NCBI RefSeq assembly: GCF_028641065.1
Contig: NC_073404.1
Coordinates: 22,692,001-22,756,000, forward strand
Reading direction: 5' to 3'
DNA length: 64,000 nt
Source: Leucoraja erinacea
Lineage: Eukaryota
How positions within the stretch are numbered: position 1 is the first letter of the stretch; each line of letters opens with the position of its first letter. Below are positions 3,507 to 62,517 of this stretch, one piece after another. Position numbers and translations under genes: made by a program. The notes beneath the pieces are model-generated. The model was not told where the DNA came from. It saw only the letters and a list, made by a program, of their open reading frames with translations, and made no database searches.

Positions 3507-3617
3507 CAGTGGCGGACTGGCCAGGGTGTCAGCTTGCCCGATGGCAAGTGGGCCCCTGATGAAGTGGGCCCCCTTTGTCTCATGGCAACCAATATTTTTG
3601 GACCCAGTCCGCCACTG
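3507..3617. mobile_element. hAT-type MITE, TIR CAGTGGCGGACTGG, 8-bp TSD tgtcagag
   Basis: 14-bp TIRs; TSD at 3499-3506 and 3618-3625. Confidence 0.85.
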
Positions 3618-24400: not shown

Positions 24401-27400
24401 GAGGTTCACAGCAGTTAATTCCTTTATCCTTTTACCACAGATGTGTCCATTGAAAGCTTCATTAATCCTAAATAATATTAGTATATTGCCATCTAGTTAA
24501 CTTACAATGGAATTCTTTCATATTGTTGCTGTGAGCTGAACACCGTTTTTTTTTAAAGCACATGCTGGCCAAATGCAGCAGCAGTACTTAATCTTTTGTT
24601 TCATTTTAAATTTAGGAGCAATTTGTTGAATCAATAAAGCAAGGAGTGGTATAGAGACAAAGGTACTAAAAAATTGATGAGTTACAGGAAATCAACAAAG
24701 AATGACAAACATTATTTATTATGCATGCCATTTTCCATCTTTATAGCTCAAATGACTTTGCCTCTGACAATAGTTCATCAGCTTCTGAAACATTCATGCA
24801 TGCCAGTTACTTAATAATCATCCCCATGAATTCCTGGTTGGCCTCCATCATTCCACTCTGCATGTTATTCAAAACTGATGTTTAGTTTGGAGATACAACA
24901 CGGAGTCTGCACCACCCAGTGATCCCCGTACATTAACACAAGCCTACACACACTAGGGACAATTTACACTTATTCCAAGTATACAAACCCAAGCCAATTA
25001 ACCTACAAACCTGTACGTCTTTGGAGTGTGAGAGGAAACTGAAGATCTCTGAGAAAACCCACGCGGTCACGGGAAGAACGTAGAAACTCCAGACAGACAG
25101 CACACATAGTCGGGATCGAACTCGGGTCTTCAGCGTTGCAAGCTCTGCAAGGCAGCAACGCTACTGCTGCACTACCGTGATGCCTGTGCCCTGATTACCA
25201 CCATGCCCGACTGACGAATCGCCTATGCCTGCTAATCTACACTGGCATGAAGCAATGATTTAATTTAAAAATTCTCATCATTTTCCAATCTCTCCACAAA
25301 TGAATCCCTCTTTATGTCAAATTTCCTCTATCCCTGCAACCATTAGGTTGCTACACTAACCTAATTCTCATCTTGTATCGTACAAATTTAACTGCTCGGA
25401 GGGACCAGACTGTCCCCAACTCTGCTGCAGCTGGCGGGGACGTTTGCCGGGTGGTCGCTGGGGTGGTGGGGGGGGGGGGGGGGGGGGGGAGGGTGCCAGT
25501 GCAGCGTGGTCAGTGACTCTGGGTAGGGGGTGGGACCAGACTGCCCCAACTCTGCTGCAGCTGACGGGGACGTTGCCGGGTTTTCGTCCCAGTGTGTCCC
25601 GCTGCCCGGAGCCGCGGCCAACCCAAAGCCCGTCACAGTGCAGCCGCACAGGGGAAGACGGAGCGGAGGGCGGCCGTGGCCGGATAGCGCTGACCCAGAG
25701 GGGGAGAGCGGGGGCTGTCCCGATGAATGCACTCCTTCGGCCGCTTACACCTTGGTGCTCGGGTTCAGAGCAAAGATACTAGAGCATTTGGTTCAGAGTG
25801 CTCAGCCACCCTCCACAATTATTTACAGCGCAAAAATTTGACCATTTCGGCGGTTTTTAACAGGTAAGAAAGTACGCATTTCGTGTGTTAACAGTGTATG
25901 CCGGAGACTGCCATGTCCTCTGGAAGAATCGAGCTGCTCCCCCTTTGACCCGATGACCTTACATATTTTCTCAGGGTTCGTCTTAGAAAAATTTCAGTAT
26001 TGTGCACATAATTCATTGTGGCACAGTACTGAAATTTTTCTATCATCTTGAAATTTGTTGCTGTTGTTAAAGATTGTACGTGAACATATATTGTTACTTT
26101 TCTTGGTGAGGATCATGAAATTGCAACATCAAAAATTAGTTGCATTCTGGCAGCAATTCTATTGAGAATATTTTATAAACAAAATTAGGATTTAGAGCAT
26201 ATAACATATTGTTCAATTAAAACAGAATTTCCAACTGCTGGAGGTCTAAATTGAAAACTGTAACAGTAACACTGATAAAAGTGAATATTGATAACGAGAA
26301 AGGGAAGCGAAGGAAGTAACTTGAAGAGTCATAGAAAATGGTGCATTAACATATTAAAAGAGAAAAAAAAAGCAAGCAATGGAAAAACAAAGACAGATAA
26401 AATCTTATCAAAATGTTCAAGAGCCTTCAGGTTTACCACCAAGATGAACCCTGAGAAAATGTGTTCATTGAGACCATTACACAATTAAATTGCAGCATGG
26501 AATTAGGTCAGTATGAACAGATTAGGCATGATGTTTGAACACATGCTTTAATGAATACAAAACAGACTGTGTGGGAGGAATCAAAACAGCTGGCAAAGAA
26601 TTGCTATTTTAGTTCCGAGGTTGTACATCATCCAAAATATTTTCGCCTAGTCCCGCACATTGCCAGTACTATTCCAAACACTATTCTAAAGACATTATAG
26701 CATTTATTCTGATTATTATAGCATTTCCTATTTCATTTGAAAGGTACTTTGTAACTCCAGTCATTGGTAAATACATTTTACCAACTAAATCTCAATGCTG
26801 TAATCATTCAGTTTTATATTTTCGAAGCAAAACTTTAGAATTTTATTTTTTCCTTCTTTATTAAGATTATGTTCAATAAGCATTAGGACCCATAATTGAC
26901 CAGAAAAAGTGCACAGAAATATGAATGCATAACATTATTTACCCCATAGATGATGCACTGTATATAGTTCACCAATTTGTGAGAAGAAGCCACCAACTGC
27001 TTCATTGTTCTCCTGTCGAAACCGAATGGCTCGAGCCCTATGAAAAATTAAATGAATCAGAAATTAATAATTAAAAATAGAGATATTTCAAATTTGATGC
27101 AATTATATTAGAACTGTGAATGATTCTGTTACAATTTTGTTGAAAATGACCTCTGAAAGTTGAAGTTTGATTCTCAAAATAATAATTATGCTCCGTCTTC
27201 CTGACATTTCAATGGTGGAGAGTGATTATACATATCTCAATTTGTTCAACATGCAGTTTTCATTATCTAGTTTACTTTTGCACAAATTAAAGTTTGATTC
27301 CTTGACACTAATAAGACTTTACACAAACACTTACAGTGCTTTAAATTCTGAATGGAGACTGAAAAATTCAATGACTTTTCATTCAACCAAAATCCTCAAA

Positions 27401-39400: not shown

Positions 39401-42400
39401 AATGAGAAATAGAAGCACTCCAGATAATCAAATTATGATTCTTTAACCAACAAAAACAGAAAAGATTGGACATTTTCTTAATCTTACCAAAGTTGGTTGT
39501 AAGCCTCCAGGGATTCTGGTTTTACACTGTGAACTGGAAAGAAAATATTTTAAATTATTTTAAATTATTCTTGAAATATAATAAATACACCCCTCAGCAG
39601 ATTAGAAAACACTTTGAATACTTACATTGAATTTTGTATAGGCTGCTTGTTTCCTTTTTAGCTAGCAAATTTGAATGAGCATCCTTACGTGGATCCACCT
39701 TTCTGACAAACAGTGATTTAAACCAGCTATCCTCCCTGTTGTTGAATGATGTAGCAGACAATGCCCTGCACAAAAACATGAATAATTACATTCCATGCTT
39801 TCTCCACCCAGAACAGTATGCCTTGCATGACTAAATACATCACCACTTATTCATAATCCTTTGGCACATCTTTGAACATGTTACTTTGTTCAATCGGTAT
39901 TCAATATTCTTGTTCTCTATTGCTGACCCAAATGCAGTGAAAACTTGCTCAATTAAGTATGGTCAACTCTTTCCTTCCCTAGCCTCTGTACTGTGGTTTC
40001 AGTCAAGGTGATTTTCACCTCAATCTCACCTCATCTTGCGCTTTATCACATGTTGGCTGCCATTCTATTCTCTGTGATTAACACACCCATATCCATGGTC
40101 ACCTACTTGGCTTTGCCATACCCTATGACTTCAGTACTTCTGTCACCTAAACATCACAGCCATTTCTGATGTATCTTCCCCACAAACCCTTTCCAATTTG
40201 TTTCTCAGCCTGCTCCTAAAGCCATACCACTCCCAATTGATTTGAAGTACACGTTTTAAAAATCTCAGCTGTTATGCCTTTGGTCCTCCATTCCCCCACA
40301 TCATATCTGAACAGATAACCAGAACTTTGTATTCCTTTTTTAATGCCCGAGGGCCCATTGTAATTATATTTTTTTCTCCCCTGATGCAGTCTTCATGTCC
40401 GGTCTCTTAAGTCCTAGAGTTGCAAATCAGGTTGGATATGCAAGACAACTAGTTTTGCAACTCAATGTCAGGTTTGATGAATCCCATAAAGTACCGTTAC
40501 GTTTTGACCTCAACTGCTCACTTCTTTGTTCAACAATGAATACACCAGAAGTGTGGCTTTTTTGCTGGCTTGCAAATTAGCTTCTTAAATTGCTCTTCCA
40601 TTCTGCTATTTGCAATCCTCCAATTCTGCACTTTCCTTTTTTCCCTTCACCCAAACAAATGGTGCATCTCAATCACCTAGTCAATCCATGTTCTAACAAC
40701 TCACATCTTTCTCTAGCCTTGTTCTAATCTTCCATCATGTCCATACAAAGACCTCATGTCATAAGATTCCCCTTCTTCGCCCTATGTTTACCAAATTGCT
40801 ACCCATCCAGTTTCTTTGCCCGAGCTTCATGTTAGTTAATAATGTTAGTAATGCTCTCCCATCAGGTGCTGTTCCCCCTCCCTCACTCCTTAACATATAG
40901 TCGTCATCCCTCCGTATAGAAAACACAATTTCAGTTCTTTCCAAATACAATCCATCTTCTCCACTGGAGAAAGTTTTCACATTGTCATTGCTGCAATACA
41001 GTTCCCATCAAAACCAGCCGTGACATCATAGGATTGCAAAAAATATTCATTTGTGTATGCTGACAGTGTGTTTTACCCATCTACCAATACCCTTGACCTA
41101 TTCAATGTCTCCAGTCATCAGTATATTTGCCGGACATTAAACACCATACTAGCACGCTTCCTTCAACTAATATAAAGCCCAAAGCCACGCATTCCTCCAG
41201 CAATTTTCTTAAAATAAACCTCAATGTCTAGGAACGTGGAGTAATATCTAATTTGTGCTTCAGAGCAGATATCCGTCATAAAAGTGAATATTTTAATTTC
41301 TGTAATACCATCCAATTCCACCGCTGCCTCTGCTCATCCTGTCATGTCTTTGACTATTGATTTGACTATTCCAAAGCATTCCTGGTCAGCTCTTTTCATT
41401 AAATCCTTGTCAAGGTTCTGTTCTTAAGACGCTGACACATACTTTCCATTTGCCCATCACTTTGTGCTTGATGAGTTACATTAATTCCCAAATCAGTTTT
41501 AAAATTCTCATCCACATTTTCAAATCTCTCTGTGGCCTCCACTCCCTGTTTTTTTCTTGTCCTATAATCTTTAGATATCGGTAATTCTTTCATTGGTAAC
41601 ACTTTCTTATTTGATCCTCTAAGACCCTATGCAATCTCCCAACCCTAAATCTACCAGTTTTATTTTTAAATCTCTTTCATTCTTTACAATCATTCCACCA
41701 GGGTTTTAGACATCTATCCCAATGTGTGGCTATATTTAAATGTGTTTTGTTAATGCTCCTGTGCTGAACAAAAGATACGGTTTTATGTGACAATGTCCTG
41801 GAAAGGTGGGAACGAAGGAAATAGGTAGGGAACTGAAATCAATGTAAAATAAGTGATTAAAATTCAGAAAAAAACAAATGCAGGCTAGGATACGTGGCAT
41901 TTGATGTGGTCATGTGTAAAGCTGTGTTATACAGGACACAAGAAGAATTTAAGGGGTACGAGTAGATGAACAATTTAATCAAATAGAACACCAGGAAAGA
42001 TAACTTGCACAAGGTACTGGTCTAAAAGCATGTCAATAAAAGACATGAAAGATTCACAGGATTATTTTGACGAACAGGAGGGAGGTCGGCCTAGATCTAA
42101 GTCAATAAATATCCTTTAATTCAGTGAAAATGGTCACCTGGTCAATTACCATAATGTTATTACTTCTGTGCATTTCTGAAATCATAACAGTGATTGTACC
42201 TCTAGGATCTTTGGTCAGCACTGTAAGCGCTTTGTGACATCAAAACCATGAAAAGGGGCGTGTAAATGCATATCTTTAAGATTCAACACCGAAAATAGAC
42301 AATATACGACTTAAAGGTTATCTGAGATTTAATGTTTACAATTTTCCTATTGTCTAATCCATCAAACATCTTCACTGCAGATGTAAAACACCGTTTAAAT

Positions 42401-46179: not shown

Positions 46180-47398
46180 TCAATTTGTCGAGGCTTTATG
46201 TTCAGAATTACTCTGTGAGGCATTGACCTCTAAGTTCTTGAATTGATCATTCAGAGATCCCATATCTGAATCAAAGTCCGTGAGGGATTCGAACATTCTG
46301 CTCCCACAGCAACGCTTTTTAGTTATAGGATCGATAATATTTCCAACTTTGAATACAATTTCAGCCAGTTCATGTTTCACATGTTTGGTTCTTCGTTCAG
46401 GTAAAGCCTTCAGAAGCACAATATCACCCACTGTGCACTGTTCTTCAGCATCATGAGCAAAATAGGTCTTCCTCTTGTTATAAAACTGGAGGGGGGGAAT
46501 GAACAGTTTAAAAAACTTACAATTTAAAAAGAAGTGCACTTAATTTATATTTAACAATATTGAAAAAATTGAAATGAGAATATGCAAAACAATTAAAAAA
46601 TATATTTTTTACAATTAAAACTATGTGTATGATAAAAGGAGTAGAAGTAACGAATAGCCCCATATTAGGGAAATGAAGATTTTAGTGATATGTAGGTTAC
46701 ATAGACATAGACATAGAAATTAGGTGCAGGAGTAGGCCATTCGGCCCTTCGAGCCTGCACCGCCATTCAATATGATCATGACTGATCATCCAACTCAGTA
46801 TCCCGTACCTGCCTTCTCTCCATACCCCCTGATCCCCTTAGCCACATCTAACTCCCTCTTAAATATAGCCAATGAACTGGCCTCAACTACCCTCTGTGGC
46901 AGAGAGTTCCAGAGATTCACCACTCTCTGTGTGAAAAAAGGTTCTTCTCATTTCTGTATATCATGTCTACAGATTTGGATCAATGGTCATAGAACACACA
47001 AACCCAATATCGTTGGAAATATTAACAAGTTAAAGGAACAAAAGTTCTGACCGAACCTATCAAAGGCTTATACACAGATTTAAAAAATACTAGAAATAAA
47101 TTGTGACATTCAAATCCCCAATCACATTATTCACTGGTATTAAGAGTGATTAAGAGTTATGAAAGTTAAAAAAAAAGATTTTGCATACAAATAACAGCTT
47201 TCAAATTGAACAAATGGTATTTTTCTGTCTTTAACCTGCAAAATATTTTACACATTTCAAACCAGACTATTTTACCTTTAACAGATATGAATTCAGGACA
47301 AGCCTAGTTACTCTGACTTTAGCTGTCTTCTGCATTTTTGTTCCAATCACTTTTCCTATAATCCACTTGGCGTGGACAGAGGCTGTTCTTGTAGACAT
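46180..47398 (-). CDS. MRPS17: Mitochondrial ribosomal protein S17, complement join(47398-47276,46485-46180), 142 aa
   Basis: [41 protein letters not shown]|[48 protein letters not shown]; GT-AG intron, phase 0. Confidence 0.96.
46700..46950 (-). mobile_element. Young 5'-truncated CR1 copy in the MRPS17 intron
   Basis: Near-identical to the copies at 10665 and 62518. Confidence 0.88.
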
Positions 47399-50430: not shown

Positions 50431-50487
50431 GTCAAAGGTCATTATGCATAAATAGCCCTGGAGAGCAGTGAACCTTCATTTCTTCTA

Positions 50488-50946
50488 AGAAATCTTCTAA
50501 GATCTGTCAGCAGATCTATATCGGTGAGACCAAGCGGAGGTTGGGCGATCGTTTCGCCGAACACCTCCGCTCGGTCCGCAATAACCTAGCTGACCTCCCG
50601 GTGGCTCAGCACTTCAACTCCCCCTCCCACTCCGCCTCTGACCTCTCTGTCCTGGGTCTCCTCCATGGCCACAGCGAGCAGCACCGGAAATTGGAGGAAA
50701 TATTCCGTTTGGGTAGTCTTATGAACATCGTCTCCCAATTTGTTGTCCTTGCTGTCTTCTTCCTCCCTTGCTGGCTCCCCTGCTGACTCCTCCCACTCTC
50801 CAGCCTTCCGGCCCCCTCCTACAGCCTTGTCCCCCCAAAGATGCCCCACCCCTGATCAGTCTGAAGAAGGGTTTCGGCCCGAAACGTTGCCTCCTTCGCT
50901 CCATAGATGCTGCTGCACCCGCTGAGTTTCTCCAGCTTTTCTGTGT
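50488..50946 (+). mobile_element. Penelope-like element 3' fragment (GIY-YIG endonuclease) plus a pLTR with a hammerhead motif, TSD-like aaccttcatttcttcta
   Basis: IYIGETKRRLGDRFAEHLRSV...VAQHFNSPSH; direct repeat at 50471-50487 and 50947-50963. Confidence 0.85.
50855..50895 (+). ncRNA. Minimal type-I hammerhead ribozyme motif of a Penelope pLTR
   Basis: CUGAAGA-A-GGGU(UUCG)GCCC-GAAACGUU with a palindromic ACGU stem III. Confidence 0.6.
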
Positions 50947-53442
50947 AACCTTCATTTCTTCTATTTTTTTCAGCTTTGATTCTTCTAGGTAAGAAAATGC
51001 TGCTTTCAAACTATGAAATAGTTGTATTTATTGTTCCTTTGTTGCCGCTTCTTCTCCGTGCTGGCTGTGACAGACGACACCAGCGGCCCCAGGCCTACAG
51101 CCAGTTACAGAAAGAAGCGCCAACCCCAGCCCAACTCCCGCCGGGCCAACCAACAGGCCCGGACCGACAACACCAGCGGCCACAAGCCCACAGCCAGTGC
51201 GGAGAAGAAGCGCCAATTCCAGCCCAGCCCCCCCGACGGGCCAGGGACTGGCAGCGGCCGACAGCCCTGGTGCCGGCGAAAACCGAGCACCAGCCATACA
51301 CACAGTGCTGCAGCAACTTGGCCTCCTTAGTTTGAAAGCAGTATTTTCTTACCTAGAAGAATCAAAGCTGGAAAAAAAGAAATTAAGGTCCACTGCTTCA
51401 CTACACTGCTTTCCAGGGCTGTTTATGCATAGTGACCTTTAACCTGGGTTTGTGCAGTCGGAATACCGAACTCGCTTATTACACTCTACACGCAGCCTCC
51501 TGTACTCTACAATATTTGGGGTTAGTCTGTTTAGTTTCATTTTTTGTCACGTGCACCGAAGTACAGTGAAAAGCTTTTGTTGGGTGCTAACCAGCCAGCA
51601 GAAAGACAATACATGATTACAATCGAGCCATTCACTGTGTAAGGGAATAACGTTTAGTGCAGGATAAAAAATATAATCTATTGTCAGTATATCATTATGT
51701 ATCATATTATATTAATGTATTATGTTGATCATGTATTATCTTTCCACTGACTAGTTAACACGTAACAAAAGGTTTACACTGTACCTTGGTACATGTGCGA
51801 TACGATACAATAGAACTTTATTTAGAAGGTTACACAGATTCACATCCCTGGGATGCAGACCATGAGGCCCTGGGTTTTTATCAGCCTTCAGTCGCATTAG
51901 TCTACCCAACACCATTTCCTGCCTAATGTGAATTTCTTTCAGTTCCTCCGTCACCCTAGATCCTCTGGCCACGAGTACTTCAGGGAGATTTTTTGTGTCT
52001 TCCTTTGTGAAGACGGATCCAAAGTACCTGTTCAACTATCAGACTTGATGGCTGAATGGCATTATTCTGCTCTTAGAACCTATGTCACAAAGTGCTGGAG
52101 TAACTCAGTGAGTCAGGCAGCATCTCTGGAGAACATGGATAGGTGATGTTTCAATCTGAAACAGGGTCCCGACCCGAAACATCACTTCTTCATGTTAACC
52201 AGAGATGCTACCTGACCTGCTGAGTTACTCCAACACTCTGTGGTCTTTTTCGTTTTACAATAGATCTTCTGGAACAGCACATAGAGTATTGCCATGTTCT
52301 GGCACCATCTAGCAACTTCCAAGCCTTTGAAAGGTCTATTCTTGGCCCATGGAGATATACATTTTCTCATGTTCTCACTTTTAGGCCTGGTGTCCTGGTG
52401 GCACTGGATCAATGAAGTGGGAGTCAGTCTCGTCCAGCGCAATGCTATCGGCTCCTTTCAATGCTGTTTTATGCCACTGGCTGCGCTTGATCCACTGGCT
52501 CATCTGGCTAAATTTAAATTGGAGACGAAAGATGGGGTTGATTTTGGAGAAGGAAATACAAGCAAAGATCTGACAGAAGATAGACACAAAGTGCTGGAGT
52601 AACTCAGTGGGTCAGACAGCATCTCTTGAGAAAAAGGACGGATGACATTTCGGGTCAGGACCCTTCTTCAAACACTGACATTGATCTGACAGTGTGGGTA
52701 CAATCTGAAAGAGCATGGAGAACGGATGAATGAATAGCAAGGGGCTGTCTGAAGCATGGGAGACTGGGAGAAGGAGAATAGTTATTTAAAATTAACAAAA
52801 CAGGAAAAGCATCAACTAGAAATGAGAATTCAAAAATTTTACATATTTCAATGAAATTGTTGAACATATTAAATGTGAAAGGCTACAAAATGTCCAGTGA
52901 AAGATGAAATGTTATTAATTGAGCCTATATTATGCTTTTTTTTTAAAGCAAATGTTGAAGCAGGATGCAGAATTAAGGTGGCAGGCAAATGGGGAAAAAA
53001 AACAGACTAGCATAATACATTACAACCATATTTTTATGGCTTTTTGAGCTTTCTGTAGAGCTATGAGGGTGGAAGATATAACATGTTTCTGTGGGTTAGT
53101 GAATAATATTTCATTCAATAATATTGCCTTTCGCGGGGGTGTGTTAAGGAGATGTGTTTTGGTACAGAAATGTTGCGGTGGGTATGTTTCCAGTTTGTGT
53201 GAATGCATTTGGGTGGGTTTTGAATGGAGTTCTTTGTTTTTTAAGGGGGGGGGGGGGAGGGGGGGGATTGCTGGGAGCTGTTATGTGGAGGGGAAAGTTC
53301 GTTTGAATGGGAGGGGAAAGGTTGTTTGAATGGGAGGGGAATGGGGAAAGTTTGTTTGAGTGGGAGGGGAAAGGGAGAAGTTTGCGTGGAGGGGGGCGGA
53401 GTTTTTGCGCGGTGCCGCGTCTGATGAAGGGAGGGTTTGTGC

Positions 53443-53467
53443 CAAAGATACTCCTCTAGTATCTTTG
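53443..53467. mobile_element. 25-bp TIR-only element CAAAGATACT...AGTATCTTTG, 8-bp TSD gtttgtgc
   Basis: TSD at 53435-53442 and 53468-53475. Confidence 0.85.
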
Positions 53468-53583
53468 GTTTGTGCGAAGTTTTGCTGCGAGTTGCTTCAT
53501 CCTCACTGGAGGGCGCGCTCCGCCATTCGGTGTTCCGTTGTGCAGCGGTGGCTCTCCCTCCCCTTTACCCAGCTAGCAGTGTC

Positions 53584-53614
53584 CAAAGATTATAGAGCTC
53601 CTCTATAATCTTTG
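53584..53614. mobile_element. 31-bp TIR-only element CAAAGATTATAGAG-ctc-CTCTATAATCTTTG, 8-bp TSD gcagtgtc
   Basis: TSD at 53576-53583 and 53615-53622; perfect 14-bp arms. Confidence 0.87.
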
Positions 53615-55636
53615 GCAGTGTCCGCTTCCCGGCTGTTTTAACCGACGTATGTCCCTGTTAGTGGGGTTGCTGTGCAGTTCATCGTCGCCTTAAGGCCGGT
53701 GCTGGTGGCGTATCGTGCGGACTCGCTGCAACTCCAGTCCGGGGCTCAACTTTGGCTGGGCCTCCATCGACGGTGAGTCCTCTGAACACAACACAAACTA
53801 TACTTAAATCAACGAAACAACCATTAATCAATATCTGCGGATTACTTGGGAAAGTTACTGTTAGTTTCCGTGTGAAAGCACTGCATTACAACAGTTAGGC
53901 CTCCAGAACGTTGAATCCTTTTAGAGGAATGTTGTTATTTTTAATGTTTATTTTGTTATCGCCAATGTTAATTCCACTCGTGGAAATGTATCTCCAATTA
54001 GAGAATCAGTCTGAAAAAGGGTCTCGACCCGAAACGTCACTCATTCTCTCGAGAAATGCTGCCGGACCCGCTGAGTTACTCCAGTTTTTTCTGTCTATTT
54101 TTAATGATTAGAAAGGTGATCGGTGCATATTTTCCACCATTAACGTTTTAGTCTCATTGCTTCTTTGGTTTGTGTTGCCAAATAAATTACCGAGTAAGAG
54201 GCAGCTAACCCTTCAAACTTGAAGTAAATCCACTTTAAAGACAAATAATGTCTGCTCTAGTTTACCTTCGCACCAGTCCATACATTACAAGTAATCAATG
54301 AAGGCCTTGTTTATCTGCACACAGGACGCTGGCAAAAAAACCCATTTCAAAGAGAAAGTACTGTAATACCACGGTTTTTCCACAGTCACACCACAGTACA
54401 TAATTGAATGATGACTATTAAGTTCATTTTAATTTAATTGATCCACAATAAAAAATCATAAAATCACCCATTTAAATATATCTAGTTCTCAATTGACTAA
54501 TTTAATGTTATCTGTGAATGCAGGTGTGTATTCTATGCTCTTGAAAGGTCTTCTAGTCTTTGTTACTCTTTATTGATATCACCCCAGATGTTATCCTTTT
54601 AAATATCTTTGTCCCCACCCCTTGTAAATCTTTCAAATTTTGAAGTAATATGTTGGATTTGCTTGACTCTTTTTCTTAGCCAATTCGAAAACTGATTTCT
54701 AGAGTCACTCACTATTCAAACTTATGACAAGGCAATTATGTTTGCTATTCTGAGTCAGTTGTATCTTCGACTATTGATTGCCACATTAAATACTGTATTT
54801 TGACTACAGTCCTCTGACAACACAGTTTAGTTTGATGCGGGATTTGTGTTTTACTGCTTTTCATAATATAATTCAACATTTCCTGCCTTTTAAATCAGTC
54901 TTATGAAGCCAAAAAGAATGACTTGATTTCAAAGGCTGCTTGACTTGTTGTGTGCCTCAAACATGGAACACAATTCATTCTTAGACCCCCAAGAATCTTT
55001 CAACTTTGTTCTTGGACATGAAAATCATGAGGTTTCCCACATCAGCTTGATCGCTTTGATATTTGCCAGCTTGTGCTTTTGGAGCTTATTTTGTTTAAAA
55101 CCCCAAAGCAATTACATAATATTCTAGACCATTGTTCTAATGCTTTATCAATATTGTTCATGAGTCGAAATGGGTTTTGGGATTAGCATTTAATTTTAAG
55201 GAAAAATATGAACAGAATAATTACGTTTTCAAATTGCTGCGTTCCATGTTGGGTTTTCCATTTGAGCAGGATTGTTTCTGACCATCTTTCACCCCATCTC
55301 TTCTTGACTTGAGCATTATTTGTTTTCCAAGTGTTTCACCTCGGGTTTCTGGAGTGGAACCGTTTCCATTCAATTGAATTGAATTGAATTGAATACCTTT
55401 ATTGTCATTTCAATGTTTATTGTTAATTCAATACCTAATTACATGATACTTTGTTTTAAGCAATGAAATGGAGGGACCCTACTCCATTCATTGGGTTGTG
55501 GAAAGCATCATGTGATGAGATTTGAATTCACTTTATTAACAGGAATCTGGAATCGTCCATTGAATCTGGACAGGGACTTTGAATGAACAGATAATTTGCA
55601 AAGAGTTAACTTGGATAATTTTCATAATTGTTCTAT

Positions 55637-59018: not shown

Positions 59019-61744
59019 GTAAGAAAGAGTATTTAGATATTTTTTTGACATTTAGTGTCCTTGGATTGTTCCAAGTTTTAGATGTAAGTGCTGTTATCTA
59101 GGCAAATTCAACCACTGAATAGTGTAAAGTAATATACAGTGGGAAATCAGATGTTGGATCTACTACTCTGTTGCAGGCAGTTGTAATTGTATGTAGTTGA
59201 ATGTGAGTCACTTGATTTAAGTTGTGAAAAGGTTCTATTTTTTTTTTTTTTCAAATATCGCAAATGAATCTTATGTTTAATGAGATTGTCGAACTCTTGT
59301 TCATTAATTAATCTGAAATATGGCATTTCTGAAATGTTACACTCTTCAATATTGAAGTATAACCCAGAGATAATGCTCACAACCCTGGAGTGGTGCTTGA
59401 ACCAATAGCCATCTCATTGAGATGAGATGTTGCCAAGTGCAGTTGCAAGAGTTTGGTCAAATGGTCTCCTGAGGAGCATAACTGGTCTTCAGATTTACAA
59501 AAAAAAAATTAATATAATAGACAATAGTTGCAGGAGTAGGCCATTTGCCCCTTCGAGCCAGCCCCGCCATTCAATGTGATCATGGCCTCCCCAATCGACC
59601 CCGCCAGCTCCGCCATTCCCCAATCTGATCATGGCTGATCATCCCTGTCAAAATGCACTGGATGGTTCCTTAGCTTGAATTGTCATTGTAATAATGAATT
59701 GTAAAATTGAATGCTCTCATTTTGAAGATTAAATACGTTTTTTCATTCACTTGTGTTAGGTTAGTTAAATTGGTTCCTGCCTTCTCCCCATATCCCCTGA
59801 CTCTGCTATTTTTTAAGAGCCCTATCTAGCTCTCTCTTGAAAGCATCCAGAGACCAAATAAGATTTATGGTTGTGCAGTAATAATGAAATATCTGTCAAA
59901 ATGCACTGGATGGTTCCTTAGCTTGAATTGTCATTGTAATAATGAATTGTAAAAGTCTCTCCCTGCACTGACCCAATCGTCTCTCCGTTTTGAAGAGCCT
60001 CCAACAGGAATACGGGGACTCTTGCCGACTTTTCAGTTCAGCGCTGCTGTGTTAGCTGTTAGTTAAATTGGATCCAATAGGTCTGTGGACGGGCGGCACC
60101 GGGAGCCCGCGGCTCCCTGGAGGGAGATCAGGGGAAAAAGTTGCGGGGTATTTTAGCTCCTTCTGGAATTTTGCGATGTCACGCCGGGGGCTCTTCACCC
60201 GGTGTAGACCACCGTGGCTTTAATCCGCGGTACAATTCGCCAGCCGGGGGCTTTGACTTGACTCTATGAATGTGCAGTGGAGAGATAGTTTATTTGGCCT
60301 TCCATCACAGCGATGTGATGGATGTTTATGTAAATTATGTTGTGTCTTGGGTCTATGTGTTTGTAATGTATGGCTGCAGAAACGGCATTTCGTTTGGACC
60401 TCAAGGGGTCCAAATGACAATTAAATGTATCTTGTATCTTGTATGTGACAGTAAAGTACCAATGAACCATTAAACTCTTGCCAGCCTAAAAATATCCTCA
60501 AGTTCTTTGAGAATACTTCTCATCCTAGTTTAAGTTTTGTTTTGGGCACTTCAATAACAAAAGGTATCATCATTTATTTACGAACGTGTCCTTTTCTAAT
60601 AAAATCAATTTGGCTGCTGCATTATGAGCCTTAACATATTCAATACTTTTTTATGTTCCCCTATCATTCCTGAAGGCTGCATGATTCATGCTGGTGTATT
60701 GTTCATATATTTGCAATGTTTAATAATATTTTCCTATGATGAGTGCCAAGCTATTTCAATGCTGGGATTGTTTATATTGGCCAAGACTAGTTTTGGTCTT
60801 ACTGATCATCCAAACATTTTTTCCAGCAGAGTTGATAAATACGAGTTGCTATTGGATAGTGTACCCTTGATTTGGTGTAACACGGGTTAGTAATGAAGAT
60901 CGCCAGCATATTGGGCATCAGAGTAGCCCTTTTTAGAGATAGCATTGCTCACCCCAGTTAGGGAAAGGACAGGAGAAGATGTTTCCAATGTTGCTCTCCT
61001 AACAATAATTAACTGGCCAGCAGACTATGGATGGCAGTTGGCCCCTTTCAGTGGTTGAAACAAGACATTAAACCAAATTGTTGTATGTGGAACTTATGTA
61101 TGTGAAGAACAGCCCTCGTAGCCAGCATGCTGTAGGATCGGTACTGCTGCTCTTGGTGAGATATAATATGCTGATGAAGAAACACTGGGCTACACCTTTT
61201 TCTGGAAAGACAAATCTGAAAATGAAGATGTGCCACCTACGCAACATTCCTTTAATAGCTTCCCAAGTTACTTGTCGGTGTCAACAGATGTGTCATGAAG
61301 CGTCGTTTCCTCATCACCTATTCCTGACACGTTAGCATCGTCAGTCCCTCTGTTCCTACCCTGACCAGCAGTGATGATGACAAGGAGGCATTTTGTGAGA
61401 ACCTTCACTTTCTGGTGAAGTCAACTCCTGTAAGCAATAAGCCCATATTACTTGGCGATTTCAGTGCTAGTGTTGGGAGTGATTGTAAGATGTGAGGAGT
61501 TTGCATGAGCTTGGAAAGGCAAACAGCAACAGGCCTCTCCTGTTGACTGTGTGTGTGTGTGGAGAATGATCCTGCCATCAACATCTGGGAACTTGAATCC
61601 CTTGTTCACCTGAGCTATTGTGGGTGCTTTAGCCATTTTATCTTTTCATAATGTCACCCAAAACTATATTGTCCAGGCCAAGAAATGCATGAACTATTAA
61701 TATTGAAGAGCAAATTGAGATATGTGTTTTATTTTGTATTGCAG

Positions 61745-61870
61745 GTGAAGTGGAAAGGAAAAGACCTTTTTGACTTGGTGTGTCGAACAATTGGATTACG
61801 GGAAACCTGGTTCTTTGGACTGCAATTCATTGTAAAAGATACATTTGCATGGTTAAAACCGGAGAAGAGG
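61745..61870 (+). CDS. Merlin/NF2-like second coding exon [42 protein letters not shown]; the gene continues beyond the window
   Basis: Merlin-specific [24 protein letters not shown], 126 nt, gcag/gtttgt flanks. Confidence 0.93.
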
Positions 61871-62517
61871 GTTTGTATCAAGTTTTTATTTGGTTTAAAA
61901 TGAATATTATTTCCAGAAATCAAGAACATTTAGAAATATTATTACATTGAAATGTCTAAAACTGAGGTATCAAGAGCATTGATTGCAATTTTTAAACTTT
62001 TGAATATGTAGATGACTAGATGCTTAAAAATTAATAGTATATTAAAACTTTCATTTTAAAATGGCTGCATTTTGACAAACCTTAGGAAAATTAACTGTAA
62101 GTAGTTATGAATTATAATTTCTAAATATTTGAAATTGTAGTTTATAAATATTTATTACCCAAGTAATAGATTTGAATAGACCAGTTATTTTTATTGAACC
62201 ATGTTTAATACTGGCCAAATAAACACCAGCCGTCAGGTTCTGCAAGCCAGGAGACGATGTAGCTTGAATATTGGTTGCCTTTGCGTCATAAATTGACGAA
62301 CAATTGATAGAGGTAAAATAATTGTGGAAATACAATGAAAACAGAAATGTGTGAAGGATTATTCAGGAGCAGGCAGCATCTATTGAGTATACGGATGTGG
62401 TTAAGTTTGAGTAGTCCAATGATTGCTCCAAACATTTCCATGCTGCTAATGATATATTTTATAGGTCTTCAAAATATCTTTGAAGCGATGTTTTACAAAC
62501 AAACTTAGTAAATAAAG

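Follow-up and report, generated by a model that had tools for sequence, protein, structure and literature searches.

Tc1/mariner transposons leave end nucleotides at the donor site after a staggered cut within the element, 2–3 nt per side together with a TA duplication. Drosophila P elements duplicate 8 bp of target sequence (target-site duplication, TSD), are released by an unusual 17-nt staggered cut and prefer promoters and replication origins (PMC7776569, PMC10983969; these two sources, PMC6086398 and PMC1131882 are cited throughout from the parts available). In the 5′ untranslated region (5′UTR) of the fly gene ATPsynC, imprecise P excision left inserts of 13, 36, 38 and 75 bp, which consist of pieces of the inverted repeat that form stem-loops, and the amount of residue tracked the severity of the phenotype (PMC6086398). 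Zebrafish Pdre2/THAP9 is a vertebrate element of the P superfamily with 13-bp inverted ends, 8-bp TSDs and an excision-competent transposase (PMC10983969), and no description of natural Pdre2 scars occurs in the available part of that source. P-type scars in laboratory flies and P-like elements in zebrafish are, in short, already known. Here we report on 64,000 nt of the skate Leucoraja erinacea (contig NC_073404.1, positions 22,692,001 to 22,756,000 of the forward strand; hereafter the window, numbered from its first base), in which two short palindromic stubs lie about 100 bp apart at the start of a merlin/NF2-like gene. We consider that stubs 1 and 2 are probably scars of P-element-type excision, left by two separate transposon visits.

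Stub 1 (25 bp, CAAAGATACTCCTCTAGTATCTTTG), located by palindrome and TSD scans, occupies 53443–53467 between two copies of the 8-bp TSD GTTTGTGC (53435–53442 and 53468–53475, read directly from the sequence). Stub 2 (31 bp, CAAAGATTATAGAGCTCCTCTATAATCTTTG), located by the same scans and seen in reads, occupies 53584–53614 between two copies of another 8-bp TSD, GCAGTGTC (53576–53583 and 53615–53622, likewise read directly). As the two stubs differ in both TSD and end variant, they represent independent events. The same family is found elsewhere in the window as a 30-bp stub at 540–569 between CTTTGCAC repeats (532–577 with the repeats) and as a 20-bp insert at 25771–25790 with the structure GTTCAGAG-CAAAGATACTAGAGCATTTG-GTTCAGAG (25763–25798 with the repeats). 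A mismatch search additionally recovered a one-sided relic on the minus strand at 42199–42213, in which 15 end nucleotides survive (CCTCTAGGATCTTTG; CAAAGATCCTAGAGG when read along that strand) and which has no direct-repeat partner that could form a TSD.

The end pieces contained in each stub were assigned by comparison with the ends of the others. The consensus family end is CAAAGAT followed by two variable bases, TAGAG or TATAG, and G or C. Stub 1 is made up of 8–10 nt of a left end (CAAAGATACT) and 15–17 nt of a right end (reverse complement CAAAGATACTAGAGG(AG)), and stub 2 of 14 nt of one end and 17 nt of the other (CAAAGATTATAGAG + CTCCTCTATAATCTTTG). In the stub at 540, a 10-nt piece of a left end is separated by 3 additional nt from a 17-nt piece of a right end (reverse complement CAAAGATCCTATAGCAG). 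The insert at 25771 is lopsided: a 14-nt left piece (CAAAGATACTAGAG) is followed by 2 nt and then by a right piece of just 4 nt (TTTG). In this assignment, which we prefer, the nine measurable end pieces are all 17 nt or shorter, and three stubs allow a reading with exactly 17 nt on one side. The four flanked stubs have lengths of 20, 25, 30 and 31 bp, four different junctions and three end variants, and each of the four is bordered by a perfect 8-bp repeat that differs from the other three, so that, with one TSD copy added to each stub, the net inserts amount to 28, 33, 38 and 39 bp. By RNA fold prediction, stub 2 forms a hairpin of −25.2 kcal/mol and stub 1 one of −15.2 kcal/mol. These readings bear out the first-pass annotation of the window, which had described the sequence at 53435–53622 exactly as found, as two TSD-flanked palindromic stubs from independent events about 100 bp apart, and had counted four events in all, with four perfect 8-bp TSDs, three variants of the terminal inverted repeat (TIR), no length above 31 bp and a TIR-only anatomy.

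The pattern CAAAGAT-N(0-30)-ATCTTTG matched the 64-kb window three times (540, 53443 and 53584) against 0.03 matches expected, and three matches were reached in 0 of 100 shuffles. A motif-blind scan, in which palindromes with arms of at least 7 and a length of 12–60 bp had to be flanked by perfect 8-bp direct repeats, yielded exactly the three known palindromes of 30, 25 and 31 bp in the window and no match in 100 first-order Markov controls. When the TSD length was varied, 7 and 9 bp added nothing, and 6 and 10 bp recovered the same sites shifted by one base; the 25771 event was recovered once the arm length was relaxed. Given these scans and controls, the anatomy lies far outside what chance would produce. 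Decayed copies beyond chance were not found in the window, where relaxed searching gave 16 matches against 12.8 expected, with a TSD only in the three known cases. No longer element with CAAAG/CTTTG ends and a perfect TSD was found within 3 kb, and a general scan for 8-bp TSDs with inverted ends up to 8 kb returned only stub 2, a miniature inverted-repeat transposable element (MITE) of CAGTGG type and four weak pairs.

Stub 2 sits within non-coding exon 1 of the merlin/NF2-like gene. This transcribed first exon, at 53530–53772 on the plus strand, was placed, with a provisional 5′ limit, from RNA depth, allele-specific reads and its splice donor: RNA depth in run X24 was 8–17 across 53536–53757, weak reads start at about 53390, and depth drops at the GTGAGT donor (53773–53778). 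Local variants flanking stub 2, at 53530, 53567 and 53574 to its left and at 53717 to its right, were carried by RNA reads, indicating that transcripts cross stub 2. Stub 1 lies where read coverage is weak, at the 5′ margin of the transcribed stretch. Gene assignments were made exon by exon from motifs; Pfam detected FERM_N in one downstream open reading frame (ORF), corresponding to a FERM_N exon near 61.7–61.9 kb. We take this ORF (61652–61900 by eye) to be merlin-like. A further exon, with the ATG and a merlin-like beginning, is located near 58.9–59.0 kb, beyond the range of the RNA comparison (to 54700). A protein search with the ORF at 53360–53605, which spans stub 1, found no relative.

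Several other features were observed around this gene start. At 53260–53400, just upstream of stub 1, a run of G is followed by G-rich tandem units, each about 30 bp long (GGGAGGGGAAAG..TTGTTTGAATG). At 53530, five bases of the window are missing from the contigs of organisms A and C (described below) and from two of three RNA reads. Repeat segments of extreme depth are located on either side of the merlin-like gene start (52574–52720 and 53980–54127) and are joined by many contigs, some of them on opposite strands.

CpG-island-like segments, 8.4% of the window in total, contain all four flanked stubs (4/4), in agreement with the GC- and CpG-rich setting noted in the first-pass annotation; the one-sided relic at 42199–42213 is outside such DNA. 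With the neighbouring stubs 1 and 2 counted as one locus, the chance of this placement is 0.084 cubed, about 6 in 10,000. Further CpG-island-like segments at 42.6–43.2 kb and 49.9–51.5 kb, possible promoters, carry no flanked stub. Three of the events had been assigned to promoters, and this holds in part. The NF2-like site has RNA support, the only site with such support for a first exon, though stub 2 is inside the transcribed exon 1 and not upstream of it. The island at 540 lies upstream of PSPH-like exons that run on the plus strand from 4.6 kb and is plausibly the promoter of that gene, a role that is presumed from position, whereas the island at 25771 is intragenic, within a NIPSNAP-like gene whose minus-strand exons span 36.9–26.9 kb.

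The gene order in the window is PSPH-like (4.6–13.3 kb, plus strand), NIPSNAP-like (26.9–36.9 kb, minus strand), MRPS17-like (46183–46539, minus strand) and merlin/NF2-like (53.5–61.9 kb, plus strand), the last two being arranged head to head. The CpG-island-like segment that holds the 540 stub also contains, 165 bp from it, an inverted repeat (733–903) whose two 84-nt arms match perfectly around a 3-nt loop. This repeat is built from an abundant SINE-like sequence and may have arisen by fold-back insertion or in the assembly. A candidate 973-bp element at 50451–51423, inside another CpG-island-like segment, has a palindromic 8-bp TSD (TATGCATA) and inverted ends matching at 12 of 14 positions; it may be due to chance.

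The region 52500–54700 was compared with short-read contigs of three organisms, A, B and C, and with raw RNA reads. Organism B (run X2) showed no differences from the window in three of its longer listed pieces and is probably the organism from which the window derives; the estimated divergence was about 0.5–1% of positions for organism A (X1) and about 2% for organism C (X7). Stub 1 was found in short-read contigs of all three organisms, and together with both TSD copies within contigs of organisms A and C. Contigs of organisms A and B contain stub 2 and break off within its palindrome. As the stubs occur in independent short-read contigs, they are not assembly artefacts. A contig of organism C joins 53560 directly to 53628, with 67 bp (53561–53627) gone, including stub 2 and both of its TSDs, and the edges of this gap show TC|CC microhomology. 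This gap is not a precise empty site; the palindrome may have been deleted later, or the repair may have had a different outcome.

Summed contig depth in the pair of bins spanning stub 2 was several hundred-fold above the local baseline in three runs. The ratio between these bins was 5.3, 5.4 and 7.5 in the three runs, against 5.2 expected from the 26:5 split of the 31 bp, which fits an excess restricted to the stub itself, and in run X2 11 contigs diverge immediately after 53614. The repeated sequence therefore ends exactly at the edge of stub 2 and recurs in the genome. Summed contig depth is not copy number, and a figure of about a thousand or more copies is a rough reading only.

In comparison with Drosophila P footprints, the skate stubs share an 8-bp TSD on both sides, end pieces of 17 nt or less placed head to head, a promoter or 5′UTR location and a hairpin-forming residue. 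The sizes are also comparable, the ATPsynC revertants of flies having inserts of 13, 36 and 38 bp (PMC6086398) and the skate sites net inserts of 28–39 bp. Unlike the fly footprints, which are laboratory alleles, the skate stubs are natural and occur in several cartilaginous-fish organisms. With zebrafish Pdre2 they share short inverted ends and 8-bp TSDs, but not the end sequence, as the CAAAGAT ends are unrelated to the Pdre2 end given in the available part of PMC10983969. They differ from Tc1/mariner footprints, with which they share end nucleotides left at the donor site, in retaining 4–17 nt per side and in having 8-bp TSDs.

By analogy with the fly system, cut-and-paste transposons of one family with ends starting CAAAGAT would have visited the NF2-like gene start twice, each element entering open CpG-rich DNA and duplicating 8 bp of target. 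At a later excision, one strand would have been cut exactly at the 3′ end of the element and the other about 17 nt further in, so that inverted-end tails of no more than 17 nt stayed on the flanking DNA on each side. End joining would then have trimmed and ligated these tails into 8–10 + 15–17 nt (stub 1) and 14 + 17 nt (stub 2), with the TSDs intact. The difference between all junctions fits independent repair events. The P-superfamily parent, the 17-nt stagger and the end-joining repair are each what we infer from this comparison.

Several observations weigh against P-type excision. No THAP or P-transposase sequence, and hence no parent element, was seen in the window: Pfam searches returned only RVT_1 and Ribosomal_S17 for 44 ORFs of at least 90 aa, and RVT_1, FERM_N and a weak bCoV_NS7B, with no transposase, for 108 stop-to-stop ORFs of at least 40 aa in 53.6–64 kb, and the two matches of a C2CH pattern scan of the window were neither of them THAP. 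Neither a precise empty site nor an occupied site was found among organisms A–C, the gap in organism C being 67 bp and not 39 bp. The 540 stub can be read instead as 10+20 nt, that is, with one end piece longer than 17 nt. The fly P target core GTCCGGAC is a GC-rich palindromic motif (PMC2577343), and the skate TSDs match it at 3–5 of 8 positions across four sites, a level to be read with the similarity of hAT targets in mind; four sites are too few for the TSD motif to tell P and hAT apart. An amplified micro-element would also match the high depth seen over stub 2, the CAAAG terminus with an 8-bp TSD is also compatible with hAT, and the whole sample consists of four or five events. hAT elements are the main rival on the superfamily, and a self-mobile micro-MITE is the main rival on the history.

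According to the latter explanation, the stubs would be micro-MITEs, 25–34-bp elements consisting of two inverted ends that are themselves mobile and generate their own TSDs, without any excision at these sites. The perfect TSDs agree with this, as does the depth over stub 2 in three organisms, hundreds of times the local baseline, which is what an amplified family would give. The same signal would, however, be produced by differently joined scars aligned at 88% likeness, and depth does not measure copy number. Uniform length and sequence are expected of MITE copies, and the first-pass annotation had likewise named uniform copies as the mark of true micro-MITEs; the flanked stubs of the window instead have four lengths and four junctions. 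Their four internal structures and three end variants, with only 4 nt of one end left at 25771, are unlike copies of one master. The fly P transposase, moreover, binds internal sites outside the terminal repeats (PMC7776569), which an element of 25–31 bp would by analogy lack. We therefore regard self-mobile micro-MITEs as unlikely.

The stubs could alternatively be what remains of hAT elements, or of elements from a different superfamily with 8-bp TSDs, whose interior was lost by internal deletion or abortive gap repair with no staggered cut. hAT elements and their MITEs have 8-bp TSDs and short inverted ends starting with CA, and the CAAAG terminus with an 8-bp TSD agrees with the hAT end pattern. 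The P-superfamily origin proposed in the first-pass annotation therefore stands as far as it fits published P behaviour (8-bp TSD, 17-nt cut, promoters), but these terminal features are shared by P and hAT and do not discriminate. TSD position 2 is T in three of the four flanked stubs and position 7 is A in two of the four, which also suits hAT, and a separate family with 8-bp TSDs does exist in the window as a MITE (3507–3617; 111 bp, perfect 14-bp inverted ends CAGTGGCGGACTGG, 8-bp TSD TGTCAGAG). We presume this MITE to be hAT-like. That family, however, persists as an ordinary 111-bp MITE and not as a stub, and hAT MITEs are usually about 100 bp or more, against 20–31 bp for the skate stubs. 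In hAT excision, the entire element end is removed via a hairpin on the flank (PMC1131882), so that 10–17 nt should not stay behind, whereas every skate stub keeps 4–17 nt of its ends instead of an end-free footprint. Random internal deletion, in turn, would not impose a ceiling of 17 nt on all nine end pieces. An origin from hAT or a similar superfamily thus appears quite improbable to us. Chance palindromes or assembly and sequencing artefacts have next to no probability, given three matches against 0.03 expected, empty controls (0/100), and stubs carried by contigs of three organisms and by RNA reads.

With P-type excision retained as the preferred explanation, the new elements of this study are the read-level presence of such scars in several organisms, a variant without one scar, and transcription through a scar. 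The first-pass annotation knew of no description in chondrichthyans, and the literature search, which left most subscription journals outside its scope, found no description of P-type scars or of a CAAAGAT family in cartilaginous fish. Within the same limits, with most subscription journals outside the search, no P-type scars were found described as natural genomic fossils in vertebrates. We tentatively propose, at somewhat less than even confidence, a broader picture: CpG-island promoters of skates would have been invaded and vacated time and again by a P-like family whose cut, as in the fly, is staggered by about 17 nt, and scars able to form hairpins, roughly a thousand or more of them, would have been left behind. 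Some of these would lie in transcribed 5′ leaders, and some would vary among closely related skates.

If the P-type interpretation is true, natural sequence alone reveals a germline-active vertebrate P-like transposase with a long stagger, a property so far established for the fruit-fly enzyme, and the family would have favoured gene starts. Scars of 25–31 bp are too short for ordinary repeat annotation, and such transposon history therefore goes uncounted. Stub 2 adds a stable predicted hairpin (−25 kcal/mol) to the leader of the merlin-like gene, and in flies similar residues in a 5′UTR reduced expression (PMC6086398). On the broader picture proposed above, the scars taken together would document, across the whole genome and in datable form, how a vertebrate P-type transposase excised elements in the germline, and they would also supply regulatory hairpins.

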